This document shows, in pieces, positions 5,590-49,220 of a stretch of DNA of 51,412 nucleotides. The notes beneath the pieces are model-generated. The model saw only the letters and a list, made by a program, of their open reading frames with translations. It did no database searches and was not told where the DNA came from. This DNA is from Octopus bimaculoides (Eukaryota), in contig NC_068981.1 in assembly GCF_001194135.2 (NCBI RefSeq), positions 39,221,806 to 39,273,217 of the forward strand, given 5' to 3'. The first letter of the stretch is position 1. Every line of letters begins with the position of its first letter. The position numbers and the translations under genes were made by a program.

Positions 5590-6135
5590 GGGGCATGACT
5601 TTATAGTTAAGACTGCTTGATTTCCAGCTCAGTCACACTGTGTGACACCTTGGGCAAGTGTCTTTCCCCATAGTTCTGAAACAACCAAAGATTTATGAGT
5701 AGATTTGATAGACAGAAACTAAAAGAAGCCTATTGTATGTGCATGTGTTTGTGTGTGTGCTTGTGTGTGTGTATGTGAATGTGTGTGTGTGTTTGCTTAT
5801 GTGTGTGTACGTGTGTGTATGTGTGTGAGTGTAGTTACACACACATATATATAGACACATATACATGTATGTAAATATGTATGTACATATGTGTGTGTGT
5901 ATGCATGTGTGTATGTAAGTGTGTACATGTTTCTATCTCCTTGTTGTGATAGTCGTAAATGTTAGTCAATGTCATTCATTCCCAATTATCTCTGAGACCA
6001 TACCTGGCATGGGAAAATATTACTTTGCTTGGAAATAGGTAAAAATTGGTAACAGGAAAAACATCTGGCTGTAGAAAATCTGCCTCAGTAAACTCCATCT
6101 GATTTATGCAGGCATGAAAAAGTAGGTATTAAAAT
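5590..6135 (+). mobile_element. CORE-type SINE with internal (TG)n, followed by an RTE-like tail
   Basis: gtgacaccttgggcaagtgtctt CORE-like motif at ~5642-5665, same family as 50121-50497 and 51229-51412. The tail ...ggctgtagaaaatctgcc...gcatgaaaaagtaggtattaaaatggtgatg matches the RTE tails elsewhere. Confidence 0.75.
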
Positions 6136-6280
6136 GGTGATGGTGGTGGCGGTGGTGGTGGCAGCGTCGGTGGTGGCATCGGTGGCGGTGGCGGCGGCGT
6201 CGGTGGCGGTGGCGGTGGCGGCGGTGGCGGTGGTGGTTGTGATGCCAGTAGTGGTGGTTGGGTTGATGTTAGTGGTGCCA
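6135..6280. repeat. (GGT/GGC)n microsatellite
   Basis: Visible run. Confidence 0.95.
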
Positions 6281-6623
6281 TCATTAGAGAATCTGAAACA
6301 GCCCTTTCTGCTTACCAACTCACACTCATAGACTCTCAACATTCTCACTATGTGTCTGTATGTTCATGTGTATGTGTGCATTCTAACAAACGATACAAAT
6401 CACCATCACAGGAATGTTGATAACAACAACAATAATTATAACATCTGGAATTTAGAAAAGACTTGCATGTTTATTGTTCCATTTATTAACTACATTAGCA
6501 GAGAGCATGTTAGCCAGTCCCTTTCTTTGCCTGAAAGTCTTAGCTTTTCCATATTGTCACTTAGACATTTACTAACATAAGCATGTGTCCAAATCATTAT
6601 TGGTATAATTCTGAATTTACCAG

Positions 6624-10715: not shown

Positions 10716-10771
10716 GTCATAACATATCAAAACATTTATCCATCAATATAATGAGTGTGGAACTCTGATAA

Positions 10772-10774
<3 letters not shown>

Positions 10775-10805
<31 letters not shown>

Positions 10806-10918
10806 CGATGACGACAACGATGATGATGATGATGATGGTGGTGGTGATGATGATTATGATGATGATGATGATGACGACGACGATGACGATGATGATGATA
10901 ATGATGATGATGATGATG
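10775..10918. repeat. (GAT)n microsatellite
   Basis: Visible run of about 48 units with GAC/GGT variants. Confidence 0.97.
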
Positions 10919-11700
10919 CTCCCACAGTTTGAAGAGAAACCTCTGTATGCCAATTTTGGAGAGCTACTGAAGACATATGTGGCAGAAAATCCTGGGACTG
11001 TTTAAAAAAGGAGCAATTAAAAAAAAGAAACAGAGAACCTTATTGTAGCAGTCCAAGATCAAGCGATAAAAACAAACAACTTGAGAAAAAATATATATGG
11101 AGAGAATGTGTCAGAAAAATGTAGAGCCTGTGGGACTTGGAAAAAGACAGTGGCACATATTGTGGCAGGATGTCCCAAGTTGGCACAGGAAGAATATAAA
11201 AATGGAGGCATGGCCAAGTGGTAAAAGTTTTACACTGGAAGATTTACCAGAAATGAGGATTTGAAGATGGAAACACATGGTACAGTAATTGGGTTGAAAG
11301 AGCTTAAAGTTGGAGAAATGTAAGATTTTGTGGTACTTTCCTATTCAAATGGACAAGAAATTAGAAAATAATAGAATAGATGTAATGATTGATCAGGAAA
11401 ATTGAAGCGGCTTACTAATCGACCCATCAAACCCATTTGAGTCTAAGATCATAAAGGAAGAGGATGAAAAACAAAACAAATACAATCCCTTAAAATTTCA
11501 AATAGGAGAAATTTGGAATATGAGAACTCTAAAGGTCATACCTATAATAATTGGTGCACTGGGAACAGTAAGCAAAGATATAGACAAATGGCTGAAGGGG
11601 ATTGACTAGAATGCCCTGTAGAGCTTCTACAGAAAGTTTGTCTCTTAGGGACAACAAGGATTATCAGGAGGGTTCTAAGCACTTGAAAAACTGCTGGAAA
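10919..11700 (+). mobile_element. 5'-truncated R4/Dong-clade retrotransposon: CCHC zinc knuckle and restriction-like endonuclease domain
   Basis: With frameshifts it reads ETENLIVAVQDQAIKTNNLRKNIYGENVSEKCRACGTWKKTVAHIVAGCPKLAQEEYK (C-x2-C-x8-H-x4-C) and ...KVIPIIIGALGTVSKDIDKWLKGI*LECPVELLQKVCLLGTTRIIRRVLST*. Confidence 0.9.
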
Positions 11701-27971: not shown

Positions 27972-28129
27972 TATTCATCATCATTGATTTGCATCTGATT
28001 TTCAATGATGGTATAGTGTGTGTGCATGTGTGTGTGTGTGTATGGTTGTGTGTGTTTGTATGTGTGTGTGTGTGTGCGCGCACGCATGCATGTGTGTATG
28101 TTTGTGCAGGTGTGTGTGTTCGTATGTGT

Positions 28130-28166
<37 letters not shown>

Positions 28167-28194
28167 CTTGTGTCTGAAAGTTGTAATTTCCATT

Positions 28195-28246
28195 TCTTGC
28201 AGAAGATTGTTCAAGTCAATTTTCACTTGAACAATCTTCTGCAAGA
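28195..28246. other. Perfect 22-bp inverted repeat with an 8-nt loop
   Basis: tcttgcagaagattgttcaagt-caattttc-acttgaacaatcttctgcaaga; the arms are exact reverse complements. Confidence 0.95.
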
Positions 28247-28496
28247 TTGTGTCTCCTGATTTTTCACGCTTGAAGCAGTGGAAATAAAAACTCCCTTAAC
28301 ATTGTAAAACATGAAAAGGCTGACAAAATGAAGAGCATCTGTCTTTAAATATACTGCATCAAATCAATATCTAATTAAATTATGCCACCATAAAAAAAAT
28401 ATTTCTAAAACAATTGACCAAACTGATAAATTTTGTTTGAAACTGAATAAAGAATTAAAGACATAGAAGTCATATAAAAACACGTAAATATGAGAA

Positions 28497-28502
28497 TTTA
28501 TT
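28497..28502 (-). terminator. Candidate polyadenylation signal AATAAA of the small secreted-protein gene
   Basis: Lies 27 nt past the TAA stop at 28529 on the minus strand. Confidence 0.4.
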
Positions 28503-28528
28503 CTTAACTTACCTTCTTGATATAAGAC

Positions 28529-28755
28529 TTAATAGTGTACGAAAGGATAATTTTCTGCAGGATAATTTCCATAAGTATAATCTGCACCAGAATAGTGTGG
28601 GTATTGATCATTAGAATTATAGACGAAATTCATATGTGGAATGTGGTAGGCAGTAATACCTGGATTTTCCGTATGTACAAGTGTATCTACATAGGGTCTG
28701 ATATTAAGCAAGATGTCAGAGAGGCCAATTGGATGATTATAACCGCCATGGTATC
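28529..28755 (-). CDS. Terminal coding exon of a small secreted Tyr/His/Gly/Asn/Pro-rich protein: (G)YHGGYNHPIGLSDILLNIRPYVDTLVHTENPGITAYHIPHMNFVYNSNDQYPHYSGADYTYGNYPAENYPFVHY*
   Basis: Acceptor aaacaaatagcag|GA (NAGNAG, alternative start 28758); phase 1 matches the exon at 30116; open to TAA; non-repetitive DNA with a strongly biased amino-acid composition. Confidence 0.7.
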
Positions 28756-28857
28756 CTGCTATTTGTTTTAAAGAATAATATATTTATTATTTGTATGTTT
28801 TAAAGTCAATAATAAATTTAGAAAATTCATATATGTAAATTCTACACAATTCATTTT

Positions 28858-29053
28858 TTGGTGTCACAAAAATTGATGAACAAGGGAGAAGCACTACAAA
28901 TCAAAGATGCACCATGTGGCTGTACAACCTCAGTGGATGATACCAGTCAGCAGACTGATGCCTGAGAGTCGCATCAAGTGGCTTCTAATGGCAGCAGCTC
29001 AAACTACAATGGGTTTGTCTCACAAAGAACATTTCCGATTACTTTTGGGCACT

Positions 29054-29057
<4 letters not shown>
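28858..29057. mobile_element. Possible ~200-bp Tc1/mariner-like MITE in the intron
   Basis: Imperfect terminal inverted repeats ggtgtcacaaaaattga and rc(ttacttttgggcactcc), ending at a (TA)n run. Confidence 0.25.
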
Positions 29058-29142
<85 letters not shown>

Positions 29143-29413
29143 NNNNNNNNNNNNNNNNNNNNNNNNNNNNNNNNNNNNNNNNNNNNNNNNNNNNNNNNNN
29201 NNNNNNNNNNNNNNNNNNNNNNNNNNNNNNNNNNNNNNNNNNNNNNNNNNNNNNNNNNNNNNNNNNNNNNNNNNNNNNNNNNNNNNNNNNNNNNNNNNNN
29301 NNNNNNNNTTTAAATTTTAAAAAGGGTGTGTGTCGATCAAAAGGGATTGTAGGAAGGAAAAACGGGGGGAGTTCGATCAAAAGGGATCGAAAAAAAAAAA
29401 GGAGCGATCAAGC

Positions 29414-29465
<52 letters not shown>
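29057..29465. repeat. (TA)n-(GATA)n repeat spanning an N gap (29143-29308)
   Basis: Visible runs on both sides of the gap. Confidence 0.95.
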
Positions 29466-30115
29466 TCACATCATTAATTAAGGTTTCTTGTTTGGATATA
29501 CATACTATGATGGCAAAAATTCTTTTCTTCATCACCTGAATGAATGCACACAGGTTGACATGAAAATCAGAGCAGTATAGGAGTAAATCTTCTGATTCAA
29601 AGAAATAAGGAAAATATACTACATATTTTTAGTACATTTCCCTCATTGGGACACTCCAGACATGTGTTAATGCACTCATACACACATATGTATAAACATA
29701 TACTCAGCTAACACACACATAAATACATACACATACATACAGACAGATATATGTGTGTATGAATGAAGATTGAGTTGAGCTACTTGTTGCAAATTAGTGA
29801 GCTTGCAAATATCTTTTTTTTTTTTCACATTAATAAATTGCTTAATTACTTTTTAAAATGACATTAATAATAACAGGACTTATATTTGAAGATTAATTAA
29901 TTATGTCTGAAGATTAATTAGATATGTCTAATGTTTGATGTATAATGTTTAACCATTAATGCATAATGATTAATCTAAATATTATGACTACTGATAATGC
30001 CAGGTTACAATCTAAATATACTTTAAAGTACTTTGTATTAGATTTTGTTTTGTAAACAACATTTTTAATAATTTAAATTGATTTACTTTTGAAGAAAAAA
30101 TATAAAAATATTTAC

Positions 30116-30206
30116 CTCCAGCTATCCAGTTAGCATTAGCTGTTGTAGGAGTGGCAAGCAATCCAACGAACACTGAAATTGTTACAAAATTGATAGTAAA
30201 TCTCAT
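30116..30206 (-). CDS. First coding exon with signal peptide MRFTINFVTISVFVGLLATPTTANA|NWIAG (phase 1)
   Basis: ATG directly after an in-frame TAA; basic n-region, hydrophobic h-region, A-N-A cleavage motif; donor GGAG|gtaaat. Confidence 0.7.
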
Positions 30207-31235: not shown

Positions 31236-31297
31236 CTGTAACAAACAGGCAAACCAGGAGAGAAGTTGAAGCCATTGTCATGTTTTTGAAAATAAAG
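31236..31297 (-). CDS. Internal exon with a start codon and a signal-peptide-like ORF MTMASTSLLVCLFVT(G/A), phase 1
   Basis: Strong acceptor ttattttacttttgacag|, aaaaacATG at 31281, consensus donor CAG|gtaaga. Confidence 0.5.
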
Positions 31298-35400: not shown

Positions 35401-35599
35401 TGTATGTATAAAATCAGTTTTATTAGAGACTTATAGAGATGCATACTTATTGTATTAGATAAACCTTACTAGAAATATTATGAAATTTTAAAATTTATTA
35501 TAAATCAGTGACAAATTTGATGGCAAATTTAATGCAGAAGGAGAATTTTGTGATATGAAATTGCAGTTTAAATGTCAATTAAATTGATCAACTACTTAC

Positions 35600-35680
35600 C
35601 AGATGGCGTATGTTGGTAGCAGAATTTTAGTATTACCTACGAAGATTCTCAGTGAAATTTGGTATTTATACTGTTCCCAC
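35600..35680 (-). other. Exon-like segment: either an 81-nt phase 2-2 exon (WEQYKYQISLRIFVGNTKILLPTYAI) or a TATA box (TATAAATA 35670-35663) plus a short non-coding first exon
   Basis: Strong acceptor tttacttcttcttttttcccaatgcacag| and consensus donor CTG|gtaagt. Confidence 0.45.
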
Positions 35681-36544
35681 CTGTGCATTGGGAAAAAAGA
35701 AGAAGTAAAACAATAGAAATTCATCCATACGTGTGTGTATGTATGATTCCAATATATATACACATATACAGAAGATACCCATATAATGAATAATTAATTT
35801 GCAAATTATGGGAATATTTCATGATATATATAACCATGATGGTAATAATTATAAATGCAAGGTCAATATTTTAGAACAAAAAACTCACCTCGTTTAGTTA
35901 TAATACTAATGAGAGAAAAACAAAAGGCCTGTGAAGAGTTTCAAGGATTTATTCAGATTGTAAACTCCATTTTCTCACAGCTTATTTCAACAAAAGATAG
36001 GAGCAAAAATAACTAGCTGAAAATTCCCACTTGGTCGTAAAGTATTACAATTTCATTGTAAAATTGATGACTAAAAGAAGGAACTCTCACAAACAAGTAT
36101 TTTAGATTAATTACAAAGTTGTTGCAAAAGTGGTGGTGGTGGTGATGTTTTTCTTACAGTATATAATTTAATTTGTTTTGAGTTCAAATACTTCATTAGT
36201 TGATGTATCTTCCATGTATGAGTGACAAATAGAATAGATGTCAGTTGTTGTTTTACACCAGAGGTGGACCTGATTGAGAAAAAGGTATCACCAAAGTCAT
36301 TCAAGCCATTATCATCCAGTCTTTTGTTTAAGAATAGATTAACCCACAAAACATTCTAAAATGTATCCTTTTCTTGCAGTAATGATGACGATGATGGTGG
36401 TGGTGGTGGTGGTGGTGACAATGACGATTCTTCTTCTTCTTGCTATAGGCACAAGGCTTGCAATTTTGTGGGGAAGGAGCTAGTCAATTACACGACCCCT
36501 TAGATATTTTATCAACCAATAATAATGATAATGATAATATTTGG

Positions 36545-38535: not shown

Positions 38536-38959
38536 TGAATAATTAAATTATAAGAGTTATTATAGTCCACATTGCATTGTTGTGCTATTCAAGACATGTT
38601 ATATTTCACATACAATATTTCAATTTTTGAGATCACATTGGTTATTAATTCTAAAAGTGATACTATGCACACAATCAAAAAATTATTGTCATAATTTATT
38701 AAAAACAAGAAATTACAAATTAAAACCCTCAACTAGTTTTTACAAATTCTAGTTAATCTTTGAAGTTGCATGCATTCAGGCTTCTGCAAGATTTTCAGTA
38801 TTCTATTTTCATATGTTTGAGTACGAACAGGATTAAAGTAGTTTCAATCTATTTCATGATCTTCTATGACTACATCATTCATTACTTCATTTACGACTTG
38901 GTGAATGTGGCTTGATTTTGATGTCTGTTCACTAAGTGTTTGATCTCTTACAGAACGTA

Positions 38960-40850
38960 CATCATCATCATCATCAGCATCATCATCATCATCATCAACA
39001 TCATCACCATCATTTAGCAACCGTTTTCCATGCTGACATGGATTAAATGGTTTGACTGAAACTGGTAAACCAGATAGCTGCACCAGGCTCCAGTCTGTTT
39101 TGGTCTGGTTTCTATGGCTGGATGCCCTTCCTAAAGCCAACCACTTCACAGAGTGAACCTGGCACCTTTAACGTGTCACAAGCACAGGTACCTTTTATGT
39201 ATCAATGGCACTGGTCATGACTATGATTTCACTTAGCCTGATGTTTCTTCTCAAGTGCAGCTAATCACCAAAAGTGTCACTCACTTGTCATCGCCTCTGT
39301 GATCACATTTCCAAAGATATCATTTCACAACTTTGGCCTACTTTTCCTGGATCTACCTCTTCCACAGGTTCGCTCCAGTTAGAGACTGGCACTTCTTTAA
39401 GCAGCTGTCCTCGTCCATATGCATCACATGTCCATATCATTCTTCGCTTGTGCACATTCATCTGATGCCTCTTACACCCAATTTTTCTCATAAGGCACTC
39501 ACACATTGTTGTACATGTACATTGTCATTGCCCATCCTGCAGAGCATACTAGCTTCATTTCTTTCAAGCCATTGCATGTCCTCTACAGTCACAGCCCATA
39601 TTTCACTGTCAGGTAGCTTGGCTGTTCACACAATCTGCCTTTTACTCATAGGAAGAGGCCCTTTGTTACCAACAAAGATAGCAGTTCTCTGAACTTCACC
39701 CAGCCAGTTCTTATTCTAGCAGCTGCATTCTCAGAGCATCCTCCTGCACTGCTGATTTGGTCTATGACTCTCATTAAGTTGTCTTGCAGGAAGTTCCAGT
39801 TATCTTCTATGTTATATGTCTGTAACTCTTCTTCTTTCTCATTACATGCTTCAGTTACGATGTCCCTAAATCTCTATGTATTCAAAGGATCCTTAAGCTC
39901 CCAGATCTTTCTTTTCCAGACTGGCCTTCTTATTGAAATCCTTATAGCCTGTAGTCTGAAGTTACTAATGACTAGCCTATGCTGAGGAATACATTCTCCA
40001 CCGGGGAAAGTCTTTACATTTTTGATCAAACATATATCTCAATTTCTGGTGAGAATGTAATCAATCTGGCTAGCTTGGTCACCAGATTGATAAGTTATCA
40101 GATGACTGGCAGGCTTCTTGAAGTTGGTGTTGTACATCGTTATGTTATCTGCATCACAGAACTTCAGAAACCTTGTTCCCTCCTCATTATAGAAACCAAT
40201 TACAAGGCCTCCATGCACACTGCACTAAACACCCAGTTGCTGCCCAAACGTGTCCATTGAAGTCACCAGCCATGAAGAGAAGGTCACTGTCATTTGTTTT
40301 TAATGTAATCTGCAAAATAATATCATAAAACAATCCTTTTGTTTATTTTGCAAACTCATTTGAAGGGCATAGGCAGAGATAATTGTCACTATACTATTTT
40401 GTAAAACTAGTCTAAGTTTAAGTAATTTAGAGTACACTCTTATTACTTCAGTCACTTTATCCACCCATTTCTCAGCTAGGAGTATGCCCACACCACCTAT
40501 CCTATCACTCCTCCATTCAAGAATCTCAACAATCTCACCAGACCTACCTTTCATTGTGCTTACAGTGCCATCTCTAAGGATATGAAGGGGAGGAGGGAGG
40601 GAGCAAGGGGAAGGGGGACAGCATTCCACTTCTGAAAGGAAGGTTTCAAAAAACGTTTGTCAACAGACATCTCATAATAGTTGTCCTCGCATTTAATCTA
40701 TCATTGTTCATTTGTGTTTCACAGTTGCATGTAGCTGAAGTGAGTGCTATACAAACATAGTTAATACAAAGATGGGCAAATAAGGTTAGTAGAAATAGTC
40801 AAGTGCTATGCAAGCATTGTTAATACAAAGATAGATAAATGAAAATAAAA
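38960..40850 (-). mobile_element. RTE LINE with an APE endonuclease start, the RT domain deleted, and C-terminus plus tail retained
   Basis: ORF 40629-40300 GTVSTMKGRSGEIVEILE...GGVGILLAEKWVDKV..ISAYALQ; linker WNFLQDNLMRVIDQI fused in frame to SSAGGCSENAAARIRTGWVKFRELLSLLVTKG; tail at 38960-39300. The 5' limit is approximate. Confidence 0.9.
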
Positions 40851-41078: not shown

Positions 41079-41340
41079 CCAGAGTAGGTGATGGGGTAGG
41101 AAAGGGTGAGGCAGAATGCACATCATAAGAAAATGTCTAAACTACTACTGGGTCTGCTAACTGAGAGACGAAATTATGATTATAATAGGTTAAATTAGAT
41201 TGGATTAAATCAAATTAAATTAAAGGCAGGTTAGCATTAACAGGGTAGAAATGTAATTAGATGAATGATGTACAATTACAGGCAAAGGTTCAAGACAACT
41301 TAGATGGTCATTTCATCGTACATAATTCATTTCAATGTAC

Positions 41341-41420
41341 AAGAAGAAGAAGAAGAAGAAGAAGAAGAAGAAGAAGAAGAAGAAGAAGAAGAAGAAGAAG
41401 AAGAAGAAGAAGAAGAAGAA
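41341..41420. repeat. (AAG)n microsatellite
   Basis: Visible pure run of about 27 units. Confidence 0.97.
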
Positions 41421-42305
41421 GCAGTAGCAGCATAGAGGCAGTAATTATCAAAGGGACAGTAATGATGAAACAAGTAAACGAGGTATTAAAGGTAAAAATT
41501 ACGATCTGGTAACATAATCTGCCAATGTGAAATATTTAATTTTTATATATTCAAAGTATAGTTAAATATGGTTCTATATAATCCTCTTATATCTTTTACA
41601 TTTTGAGTTCCCTAAAGAATTATATAGGATCCTGTGGTCTGTAGAAAGACCGTGACTATTAAGGAACTATTACAGATTGGTAGACATGAAAAAGAGCCCC
41701 AGTTCATTCTGAATGAATAGCATAAATAATGGCATAACAAAAATAGACAAGAGATTATTTAAGTTTGTAATAATTGTATAAGCATTTGCAACATAGAATT
41801 ATACAAATGAGAATAGAAAAGGGGAAAATTCATCAGTTGTAAGTATATATTCAAATTATTAGAACAAAGAAGAGATCCTTCGAAGTTTATTGACAAACAC
41901 TGAAATGGACACATTTTTTACATAAGAATGTGAACTTTTGAATAATAAAAGTTATGTTTCATTTCATTTCATACATGTCACTTGGTACAAACATGACGTA
42001 CTTCTTCACTAAAAAAGCATGAGTGCATGTTTTATTATAAAATGAAGTATTTTTCTTAAACCAGAGTGTACTTAGTGATTATGTATAATTCTAACTATGT
42101 ACATGTCAAAGAGGCATTACAAGTACAAGCTAGGCAATCAATGTTTTATTGTCAAGAATGAATGAAACAAATGTTTTGTTTTGCACTGAATTAAAATTTT
42201 TCGTGAGGAAATGTTTTCATTTTTTTTCACAGCTTCTTGTATCTAACCACATAAGCTTCAGTTTTGTCAACCGAATAAGCAGTTTTCTTCTTTGCAATTA
42301 CACAG

Positions 42306-46210: not shown

Positions 46211-48257
46211 ATATATAAGGGAATCTCTGATAGTTTGATCAACTGAATGATAAAGTGGTTTTCTTTTTGCACTCAAACATAATGCTATCCCCAGCAGTAT
46301 TGAACTTGGTGTTCTAATATTTCTTTGCACTTCTTAAGTATTAATTAATTGCTTTGTTTCCAAATATGAATGAATTTATTTAAAGTGAACATATCAAAGT
46401 AATATAAACAAATTAAATAGTTATAATACCATAAACACAAATGAGTTTTAACTTACTTTGTTTTCTTTACAGGGAAAAATCTGTTAATAGATATTATTGT
46501 GTAACCAGAGCCATTTAATCTTTCATGATATTTTTGATAAAATACACTGCAAATATGTTTCAGTTAGTTTTGAAAATAACAAAAATTTCATGGGACTTAG
46601 TGAGTTCGAATCTTACCAAGCTCAACTTTGCTTTTCATCCAAAAGGATGATAGGCAATGTAACAATCGAATACTGGGGTCAATGTAATCATCAACTAACA
46701 CCTCTTCTCAAATTTCCGGTATCATGCTATGTTAGAAACAGTTATTGAGCTGATATTTAGAACATCACTTAACAAAGGGTTCTTCTATAAAATCATGATG
46801 GAAGGTTTTAATTTCAATATGAATACTTTAAAATATGAAATTTTGTAACATAGAGGAACAAGAGGAAATCTCAGGCAAGTCAATATTGAAAGGGTTAATG
46901 GCATTTTTATAAAGCTTTGATACAGCAATGTAAATTCTGCTTAGAAATTCTGTTGAGAATTGCTTACGATAACTTTAAGGTTTCAATCTTTACACTGTTT
47001 GAAATATTAATTCTATTCAAGACAATGATTGATGTACTTTGGACATGAAACAATTTACCTAACACAGCATGACATCCACCTCTTATAAGTATTAACGGAA
47101 ACATATTTTTATTGATGATGCTATTTTAACAATGATACATTTCAGTTAACAAAAGAGTGTAAACAATTTTAATTAAAGATGATTTTCAAATATATTATCA
47201 ATAACCTATTTATATTTATCAAATTATAAGTATTGAATGTAAATATTTTAAAATTATAGTTCATTTCTGGCTGCAATAATACATCATAATACTTCAAAGC
47301 AGCAAAATATCAATAAATTCCTTGTGAGTAATCAAAGACTTTGGGTCACAGTCATAGAACCAAATAGTTAAGATATCCGTGTCTATCCTCCCCTACCAGT
47401 TCTCTTTCTCTAGATATGATTATTAAGAAGAAGAATTTCATTAAATCTCATTTTCCTCTCTTATCGTTATAGCAATAAATCACATGTGGTAGGAATAAAC
47501 TTTCTTTTGAAACATGTCAGCCATTGAGACAAGGGTTAACACAGAGGTGCAGAAACAGCTTTTCATTTGCTCCTCTTATTCCTGTCTAAATTACTTTGAT
47601 CATATTTACTTTAATATCAGAAAAATCATATTGATGAAGGTAATAAAAGAAAATATTCAATAAAATTGGTAATCAAAGGCAGTTAGTAGTGAAGAAATTA
47701 AAGCTGGCCGGAAAGAAAAAGCAAAAGAAAGAAAGAAAAGAAAAGAAATCTATTTCTTAGAATATCAATAATCATGATTTGAAAGTACTAGCCACTAGAT
47801 GAAAGATGTTCATGGTATTAATTTTGCCTCAATTGCAAAGAAAATACTCAAGTTATTTATCACTTTCCCTTGTATAATGAGTAAGATGATTCTCTAGTAG
47901 ATACATTTCTGGAAGAAGAAAGGCATGCAGAATGCTGTCCATTGACTTTCTTATATCCATTACCACATTATGGAGAAAGAGACCCAGAGACCCTGATAGT
48001 TTTTATTAATAGAAAAATAAATGTTTCTCAGTAAGAATAAAAGATTGTTGGAACATAAATAAAATGGGTATTTGTCACTCTTCCTTGTTTCACACTTCTT
48101 TTAATGCACACATATATATTCACACATATATACACATACATACACATACATTTACACATACATACACACATATATACACACAGTCTTCATCGGAGAAGGA
48201 AATTCAAACTGACATTTTACATCCATCAAATCTTGGGTGGTAAACTTAAACCCTTAC

Positions 48258-48639: not shown

Positions 48640-48790
48640 TTATAGCTTAGACACAAGGGCACACCATTTAGAGAAAGCTGGATAATATATCAAACCTGTA
48701 TGCAAGACTAGTACTTTACTTTGTTGATCCTTAGGCTGAAAGGTAAAAGTTGAATTGGGTAGGAGTTGATCTTGAATGTAAAGAGACACA
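48640..48790 (-). mobile_element. Degenerate SINE
   Basis: gacacaagggc...tagtactttac..ttgatccttaggctgaaaggtaaaagttga, similar to 50811-51025. Confidence 0.55.
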
Positions 48791-48804
48791 ATTCAATTAA
48801 TTCA

Positions 48805-48815
48805 CCAAGTAGTAA

Positions 48816-48846
<31 letters not shown>

Positions 48847-48915
48847 GGTGGTGGCAGCGATAGTAGCAGCAGTATTAACAGCAGCAACAGTAGTGGCAGT
48901 GGAAACAGTGGCAGC
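48805..48915. repeat. (AGT)n/(GGT)n/(AGC)n compound microsatellite
   Basis: Visible run. Confidence 0.92.
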
Positions 48916-49220
48916 AGAAGGATCCCTAATAGAAGTTTAATATTTTAGTTTCAAAATGACAGTTTTAGTGTTCTGCAGTGAGGTATTTCAAGACATTCCA
49001 TGTAATTTAACCTGGTGGCTTACAAACCATGTTTGACATGTAATTTTAAATGAAAGAAGAACTACATTAATGAAGAACTTTTTAATTAAGACTGCTATAT
49101 TCATATGTGATATATTTTTTAGTATATTGTTTAATTTGTGAAATTGTATAAAAATAATTAACCTCACTTTTGCGAGGCATGGCATTCTGAGAATTAGTGA
49201 AAGCATCTGAGAATCTAGCG

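Follow-up and report, generated by a model that had tools for sequence, protein, structure and literature searches.

The minus strand of the Octopus bimaculoides DNA stretch studied here (the window; 51,412 nucleotides (nt) of contig NC_068981.1, numbered from its first letter) carries RefSeq gene LOC106877637, the product of which is named 'uncharacterized protein' in both RefSeq and UniProt. The initial annotation of the window had described an unannotated-looking, two-exon gene for a small secreted protein at 28529-30206. The locus is LOC106877637, or A0A0L8GCW4 in UniProt, and the gene thus is already catalogued and not new. Moreover, its public coding sequence (CDS) has four coding exons, here termed A to D, of which the two-exon model covers the last two, equivalent to the 3′ two-thirds. 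The outcome is a correction rather than a discovery, as the start codon probably was mis-assigned and two upstream exons were missed.

When 5.8 billion proteins were searched, a single cluster was returned in which the best match was XP_014782070.2 with 97% identity. At the 90% level this cluster consists of three database entries only: XP_014782070.2 (145 amino acids (aa), start at 35688), XP_014782070.1 (110 aa, start at 31281 within exon B), and UniProt A0A0L8GCW4 (157 aa, start at 35724), all on the minus strand. The 145-aa protein mapped by tblastn at 100% identity to four minus-strand places in the window, and its CDS was rebuilt exactly from exons A, B, C, and D. Of the window, 27,160 nt correspond to positions 39,240,334-39,267,493 of CM046601.1 in assembly GCA_001194135.2 with 0 mismatches, gaps included; this assembly has been published (PMC9068888). 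An exact look-up of the 145-aa protein in the assembly collection retrieved the NCBI chromosome only, and the 110-aa form is not on record in that collection. No mention of LOC106877637, XP_014782070, or A0A0L8GCW4 was found in the literature.

Exon structure and start codon

Exon C (30116..30172, minus strand) is common to the initial model and to all of the public models. It is preceded by the acceptor caatttcag/TG (first base 30172; the slash denotes an exon boundary or a cleavage site throughout) and its product is the signal peptide's second half together with the predicted cleavage site and the start of the mature protein, (V)FVGLLATPTTANA/NWIAG. The 3′ end of the exon reads ...GCTGGAG followed by GTAAAT, which places the donor GT at 30115-30114 on the minus strand. 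This donor, GAG/GTAAAT with its G at 30115, ranked 92nd among the 5473 GT sites of the window. The splice matrices used for this purpose were generic and served only to rank sites within the window (5473 GT and 5966 acceptor sites, both strands); the acceptor ranking was not relied on. The last intron (28759..30115, minus strand) is a GT..AG intron of phase 1. It is followed by the coding part of exon D (28529..28758, minus strand), which encodes (A)GYHGG...NYPFVHY, terminates with a TAA stop codon at 28531-28529, and matches aa 70-145 of the 145-aa protein at 100% in tblastn.

The junction between exons C and D that had been proposed for a 105-aa product was reproduced: 91 nt from ATG 30206 to 30116 and 227 nt from 28755 to 28529 on the minus strand total 318 nt in frame. 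The acceptor had been placed at ...aaacaaatagcag, with AG at 28757-28756 on the minus strand. Here the join and the reading frame hold, but RefSeq takes the AG located 3 nt upstream. The site is a tandem acceptor, TAG/CAG/, at which the first base of exon D is 28758 in RefSeq and 28755 in the initial model. Both options are in frame, and the RefSeq choice inserts one extra Ala to give ...IAGAGYHGG... The mature protein is the same in the initial and public models, give or take this one Ala. As a control, the 51-kb window was scanned on both strands for loci in which an ATG and a hydrophobic 12-mer are accompanied within 18-45 codons by a donor no worse than GAG/GTAAAT. Only four loci emerged: a pair of microsatellites, a site within exon D that is out of frame, and the exon of the initial annotation. 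Thus, the core formed by exons C and D is a genuine signal that is independent of annotation.

Exon B (31236..31297, minus strand) includes ATG codons at 31281 and 31275, encodes the signal peptide's first half, MTMASTSLLVCLFVT, and matches aa 31-50 at 100% in tblastn. The contexts of the two ATG codons, aaaaacATGa and acaATGg (A at -3, G at +4), are good to optimal Kozak sequences. The donor of the exon, CAG/GTAAGA (31235), ranked sixth of the 5473 GT sites and its acceptor ranked 124th of the 5966 acceptor sites. Exon A (35600..35688, minus strand) contributes codons 1-29 plus 2 nt of XP_014782070.2 in RefSeq, with a tblastn match of 100% for aa 1-29, and ends with the donor CTG/GTAAGT (G at 35599) that ranked ninth of the 5473 GT sites on the two strands. 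The donors of exons A and B sit exactly where the reading frame requires them. When exon B is included, the hydrophobic core of the signal peptide attains a best 12-residue Kyte-Doolittle mean of 2.93 compared to 2.52 in the version described initially.

The ATG at 35688 lies in a weak context (ttcccaATGc) and falls within a strong acceptor-like site, ttttttcccaatgcacag/G, for which the first exon base would be 35680 and which ranked 23rd of the 5966 acceptor sites. The second best donor in the window, GAG/GTGAGT at 35888 on the minus strand, is situated ~200 nt upstream of this 35680 acceptor (top 0.4%). The pair suggests that there is a further 5′ exon and that the N-termini of the 145- and 157-aa proteins run through an intron or promoter. 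A TATA element, TATAAATA, at 35670 on the minus strand is a signal that competes with the 35680 acceptor. The in-frame sequence further upstream translates to LFIIWVSSVYVYIYWNHTYTHVW... and derives from TA/CA-rich simple sequence. If an exon starts at 35680, or if transcription starts ~30 nt past the TATA element, the upstream ATG codons would be outside the mRNA and the first ATG would be that in exon B. The start conflict among the public models (110, 145, and 157 aa) therefore is one in which the sequence signals favor the shortest form: the 110-aa protein that starts in exon B (31281/31275) is the most likely product, rather than one starting at ATG 30206 and probably rather than one starting at 35688. 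By the same signals, exon A probably is 5′ untranslated region (UTR) and not coding, and the current RefSeq and UniProt N-termini probably are over-extended.

Downstream of exon D, an AATAAA polyadenylation-type hexamer (28497..28502, minus strand) begins 29 nt past the first base of the stop codon. On its own the hexamer is weak evidence as AATAAA occurs in the window at 1.74 copies per kb per strand. A donor-like sequence, AAG/GTAAGT, is located at 28512 on the minus strand, 17 nt past the stop codon, with AATAAA directly after it; this site is the fifth best of the 5473 GT sites. Either the 3′ UTR would be spliced onto a further exon, or the transcript would end near 28512, and in both cases the protein would be unaffected. 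More generally, seven of the nine best donors of the window are on the minus strand (48257, 35888, 26371, 19573, 28512, 31235, and 35599), and those at 48257, 26371, and 19573 are far outside the annotated CDS. Based on the generic matrix, additional UTR exons or a minus-strand transcription unit of greater length may account for this set.

The last intron contains an assembly gap at 29143-29308, both in the initial and in the public model, together with (TATC)n arrays as read on the minus strand. The gap adjoins (ATAG)n repeats at 29056-29142, with another array of this unit at 29414-29463, and looks like an unresolved stretch of microsatellite. The same three gaps, with equal lengths, are present in GCA_001194135.2. 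None of the three public models places an exon in the gap region, and the length of the gap cannot alter the reading frame, which depends on the splice junction. Just upstream of the gap, at 29310-29412 on the minus strand, a motif containing TTGATCG is found three times among T- and C-runs; this unusual sequence may be poorly assembled. Short plus-strand open reading frames (ORFs) at 28858-29095 within the intron end beside CCGATTACTTTTGGGCACTCC. These ORFs and the adjoining sequence may be similar to a mariner-type transposon at its C-terminal end and inverted repeat, but Pfam found nothing.

The predicted protein and its coding character

The N-terminal region of the precursor comprises a hydrophobic h-region, VCLFVTVFVGLL, which accounts for the 12-residue mean of 2.93, followed by TPTTANA/N with the small residues at positions -3 and -1 that are expected of a secretory protein. 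The earlier proposal of a small protein with an N-terminal signal-like segment ending in T-T-A-N-A/N thus was borne out by the hydropathy heuristic. The mature protein would be 80 or 81 aa with a mass of 9.2-9.3 kDa, the one residue being determined by the choice of AG at the TAG-CAG tandem acceptor. The residue counts given previously for the 80-aa version were exact: 12 Tyr, 9 Asn, 8 Gly, 7 His, and 7 Pro, with neither Cys nor Lys. The mature protein has an isoelectric point (pI) of 5.64, a grand average of hydropathy (GRAVY) of approximately -0.55, and contains 19% aromatic residues, 15% Tyr, and 9% His. Its calculated net charge changes from +2.2 at pH 5 to -5.8 at pH 8. Arg occurs once, and neither an N-glycosylation sequon nor a dibasic site is found. 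Three (N/Q)YP tripeptides and one GGY are present, and there is no tandem repeat. When the exon D product was modeled with AlphaFold2 without an alignment, the mean predicted local distance difference test (pLDDT) value was 49 and the predicted template modeling (pTM) score was 0.15; the only regular structure was a short central helix over LSDILLNIRPYVDTLVH. From this low-confidence model, which is too poor for a fold search, the mature protein is read as mostly disordered.

An open frame by itself is no evidence of a gene here as the window includes 80 N-free open stretches of at least 76 codons. The composition of exon D nevertheless deviates strongly from that expected from the local base composition. 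Gly, Pro, and His together account for 22 of 81 residues compared to 7.4 expected (P = 2.7e-6), Lys is entirely missing (P = 0.009), and there are 12 Tyr residues compared to 4.9 expected. The GC content at the three codon positions is 0.51/0.34/0.26, and G occupies only 4% of third positions. In a chi-square test of base by codon position, exon D ranked 13th among the 80 open stretches. Those ranked above it that were inspected are trinucleotide microsatellites or low-complexity runs, which translate to poly-Met, poly-His/Thr, poly-Asp, poly-Arg, and poly-Leu/Pro. Thus, of the stretches inspected, exon D has the highest codon periodicity outside microsatellites. A 78-aa ORF on the plus strand at 28535-28771, antisense to exon D, has a codon periodicity that mirrors that of exon D and is explained most simply as a by-product of codon usage on the sense strand rather than as a gene.

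Relatives and comparison with known proteins

Database searches with the protein produced no match in Pfam at E values up to 10 or among PDB sequences at E values up to 1, and a word-indexed protein search yielded XP_014782070.2 as the one candidate. A phmmer search of 1.84 billion cluster representatives, which cover annotated or called proteins only, recovered the protein itself and a translated tandem repeat. The latter (P0004, E = 4e-7) was considered as a remote homolog and dismissed, as it is made up of tandem units of ~60 aa and bears no true relationship to the protein. Similarly, a candidate paralog at 37069-36998 (tblastn, 25 bits, E ~0.02-0.04) was attributed to chance: 55 of 300 shuffled queries reached its score and there is no similarity at the DNA level. 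No paralog of the gene was detected by tblastn within the 51-kb window. By way of control, a LINE endonuclease fragment from the window retrieved an O. vulgaris protein as well as Logan and ENA ORFs, and other octopod proteins therefore are present in the library. The earlier suggestion that the protein is lineage-specific is consistent with the lack of homologs in these very large protein libraries, and a match to a characterized family, which would have removed its novelty, emerged in none of Pfam, PDB, or the phmmer search. As far as protein databases show, LOC106877637 is a taxonomically restricted (orphan) gene that belongs to no described family. It is a clean case of an octopus gene of restricted taxonomic range, with a secreted, low-complexity product and no relatives among billions of sequences.

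According to the initial annotation, the repeat patterns of His-rich beak proteins (HBPs), suckerins, and reflectins are all missing from the protein, and the motif counts agree. HBPs, which are exemplified by HBP-1, HBP-2, and HBP-3 of Dosidicus gigas and by the Doryteuthis and Euprymna clusters, possess >50% Gly, Ala, and His, a pI of ~6, and C-terminal tandem GHGXaXb repeats (GHGPY/GHGLY) with or without GFA/GAGFA motifs (PMC11931252). They are encoded in tandem gene clusters and show buccal-mass expression (PMC9068888). The LOC106877637 product resembles HBPs in being small, secreted, and predicted to be disordered, in containing His, Gly, and Tyr, and in its pI near 6 (5.64) and His-titratable charge (PMC11931252). 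In contrast to the >50% of HBPs, Gly, Ala, and His comprise 24.7% of the 81-aa mature protein, and there are 0 matches to GHG.., GHG.Y, GAGFA, or GFA. Furthermore, the protein is ~9 kDa compared to 15-18 kDa for HBPs, shows no sequence similarity to them by phmmer, and has no tandem paralog within 51 kb.

Like the LOC106877637 product, suckerins are secreted and contain Gly, Tyr, and His. However, the protein described here lacks the alternation of Ala/His-rich and Gly/Tyr-rich segments, has one GGY and no GGLY, and has no suckerin match by phmmer. Suckerins, which form the sucker ring teeth of squid and cuttlefish, have been reported only in decapodiforms and not in O. bimaculoides (PMC9068888). 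More broadly, HBPs and suckerins are both reported from squids and from bobtail squid, and neither was found in O. bimaculoides (PMC9068888, section 11). Reflectins also are cephalopod-restricted, Tyr-rich, and disordered, but lack the signal-like segment evident here. Met and Arg together account for just 2.5% of the mature LOC106877637 product, which has 0 [M/F]D(X)5MD motifs and no sequence similarity to reflectins by phmmer. In sum, only in its pI and in having a signal peptide does the protein conform to any testable defining feature of HBPs, suckerins, and reflectins.

Mussel foot proteins 3 and 5 and the shematrin and other Gly/Tyr-rich shell-matrix proteins are short, secreted, low-complexity proteins with many Tyr, Gly, and Asn residues, and mussel foot protein 5 holds a GYHGGY-type stretch. 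These mussel and shell proteins are strongly basic and Lys/Arg-rich, or highly repetitive, whereas the octopus protein has no Lys, one Arg, a pI of 5.6, and no tandem repeat. No sequence similarity to mussel foot or shematrin proteins was detected by phmmer. The protein also does not have the hallmarks of a neuropeptide or prohormone precursor: there is no dibasic (KR/RR/KK) site and no Gly amidation signal, Arg occurs once, and Lys is absent.

Alternative readings and possible function

Overall, the best explanation of the locus, and one that we hold to be reasonably probable, is that LOC106877637 consists of at least four minus-strand exons, is translated from a start in exon B, and specifies a secreted, mostly disordered orphan protein. 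According to the splice and start signals and the public models, the transcript would comprise four or more spliced minus-strand exons and translation would begin at the Kozak-optimal ATG pair in exon B to produce a 110-aa precursor. Its 29-aa signal peptide would be split over two exons, with MTMASTSLLVCLFVT from exon B followed by VFVGLLATPTTANA from exon C. By sequence rules, the precursor would enter the endoplasmic reticulum and would be cleaved after Ala-Asn-Ala, so that a protein of 80 or 81 aa and 9.2-9.3 kDa, mostly disordered in the low-confidence model, would be secreted. Through its Tyr, His, and Pro side chains, the protein then could help a chitinous or secreted structure to cohere or to become oxidatively cross-linked. 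A number of points weigh against this explanation. The signal peptide was judged by hydropathy and the -3/-1 rule only, which is a heuristic procedure. The exon structure rests on the three public models, among which the start differs (110, 145, and 157 aa). The annotated acceptors of exons C and D rank only 1693rd and 3272nd of the 5966 acceptor sites with the crude generic matrix. In known cephalopod material proteins coacervation is driven by tandem repeats (PMC11931252), which this protein does not have, and it is anionic at the pH of seawater. Last, no ortholog that would show purifying selection was found in the protein libraries.

The 5′ end of exon C invites a different reading. The initial annotation began translation at ATG 30206, the first of 11 codons (MRFTINFVTIS) in an extension of exon C (30173..30206, minus strand) that lies upstream of the annotated acceptor at 30172. 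A two-exon transcript that starts upstream of 30206, and that specifies the signal peptide MRFTINFVTISVFVGLLATPTTANA, might exist, whether as the predominant form or through use of an alternative first exon. The ORF from 30206 is intact, the Arg at position 2 would provide a classical positively charged n-region, and the hydrophobic core has a 12-residue mean of 2.52 and leads to the same ANA cleavage site; furthermore, the annotated acceptor at 30172 is poor on the generic matrix and the 5′ end already is in dispute among the three public models. However, ATG 30206 is used in none of the three public proteins, has a weak context (ttataaATGa, with T at -3), and is directly preceded by an in-frame TAA. 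The sole TATAAA nearby (30211) overlaps ATG 30206 and would put the transcription start site downstream of this ATG, the 11 extra codons are T-rich and end in tttcag in the manner of the 3′ end of an intron, and two of the ten best donors of the window coincide exactly with the ends of exons A and B while maintaining the reading frame. Thus, 30173..30206 probably is intron, constituting the T-rich tract ahead of the acceptor, and possibly an alternative first exon; the low ranks of the acceptors of exons C and D leave some room for the two-exon transcript, which we consider unlikely. A further explanation, which is doubtful, is that the locus is transcribed but that the ORF is functionless or untranslated. 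It would then be an ORF of recent de novo origin or else a gene model over-predicted in DNA rich in AT and in repeats. The protein has no homolog anywhere in the library, although O. vulgaris proteins are included there, LOC106877637 is unmentioned in the literature, no transcript-derived ORF for the locus is on record in the assembly collection, the 80 open stretches of at least 76 codons render openness uninformative, and the predicted structure is of low confidence. Set against this, the composition of exon D is far removed from local base expectation in its Gly, Pro, and His content, its lack of Lys, and the rarity of G at third positions, and its periodicity is the best among the non-microsatellite open frames. 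Moreover, the locus combines a signal peptide that has a proper -3/-1 site with an optimal Kozak ATG and with introns of compatible phase, and the JGI and NCBI annotation pipelines independently made the same joins between exons B, C, and D.

If the gene encodes a secreted orphan protein that starts in exon B, its composition tentatively points to a function as an extracellular matrix or material protein. Composition also underlies the initial proposal of a structural or adhesive material with possible Tyr/DOPA-His cross-linking. The protein alternatively could be a secreted bioactive peptide, such as a Gly/His/Tyr-rich host-defense peptide, a component of saliva or venom, or a signaling peptide. 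Its small size and signal peptide are in keeping with this proposal, as are its lineage-restricted nature and possibly rapid evolution, which are common for immune and venom genes. The N-terminal GYHGGYNH sequence also may be akin to Gly/His-rich defense peptides. Nonetheless, a net charge of approximately -6 at pH 8 and a pI of 5.6 are unlike those of cationic antimicrobial peptides, the Cys framework of most venom peptides is missing, as are the dibasic and amidation signals of neuropeptide precursors, and the protein matches no described family. A bioactive peptide accordingly is improbable.

The report that HBPs and suckerins were not found in O. bimaculoides makes proteins of the type encoded by LOC106877637 reasonable candidates for roles in beak hardening or the lining of suckers. 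In the most specific version of a material function, an octopod-specific protein would perform in the octopus beak, radula, or sucker lining the task of squid HBPs, and would rely for this on a charge that switches with pH and on dispersed Tyr, His, and Pro residues, not on GHGXY repeats. This version is a long shot, but if true it would define a new, non-repetitive class of sclerotization or cohesion protein. The reported non-detection of HBPs and suckerins is the only route by which the gene could gain interest, and nothing in this analysis ties it to beak or sucker tissue.

Elsewhere in the window, Rfam and tRNA scans of the whole stretch returned nothing, and Pfam searches with the other long ORFs also returned nothing. 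Most of the long 'ORFs' of the window are microsatellite runs (poly-His/Thr, poly-Met, poly-Asp, poly-Arg, poly-Leu/Pro, and Cys/Val), none of which is gene-like. These tri- and dinucleotide microsatellites generate long stop-free runs at 2190-2810, 6090-6420, 10720-11000, 27980-28300, 38850-39170, 41260-41510, and 48710-48945. A 109-aa ORF at 40303-40629 on the minus strand is a fragment of a LINE-type endonuclease. The fragment itself has no Pfam match; its relatives carry Pfam PF03372, and one of these relatives is the O. vulgaris 'craniofacial development protein 2-like'.

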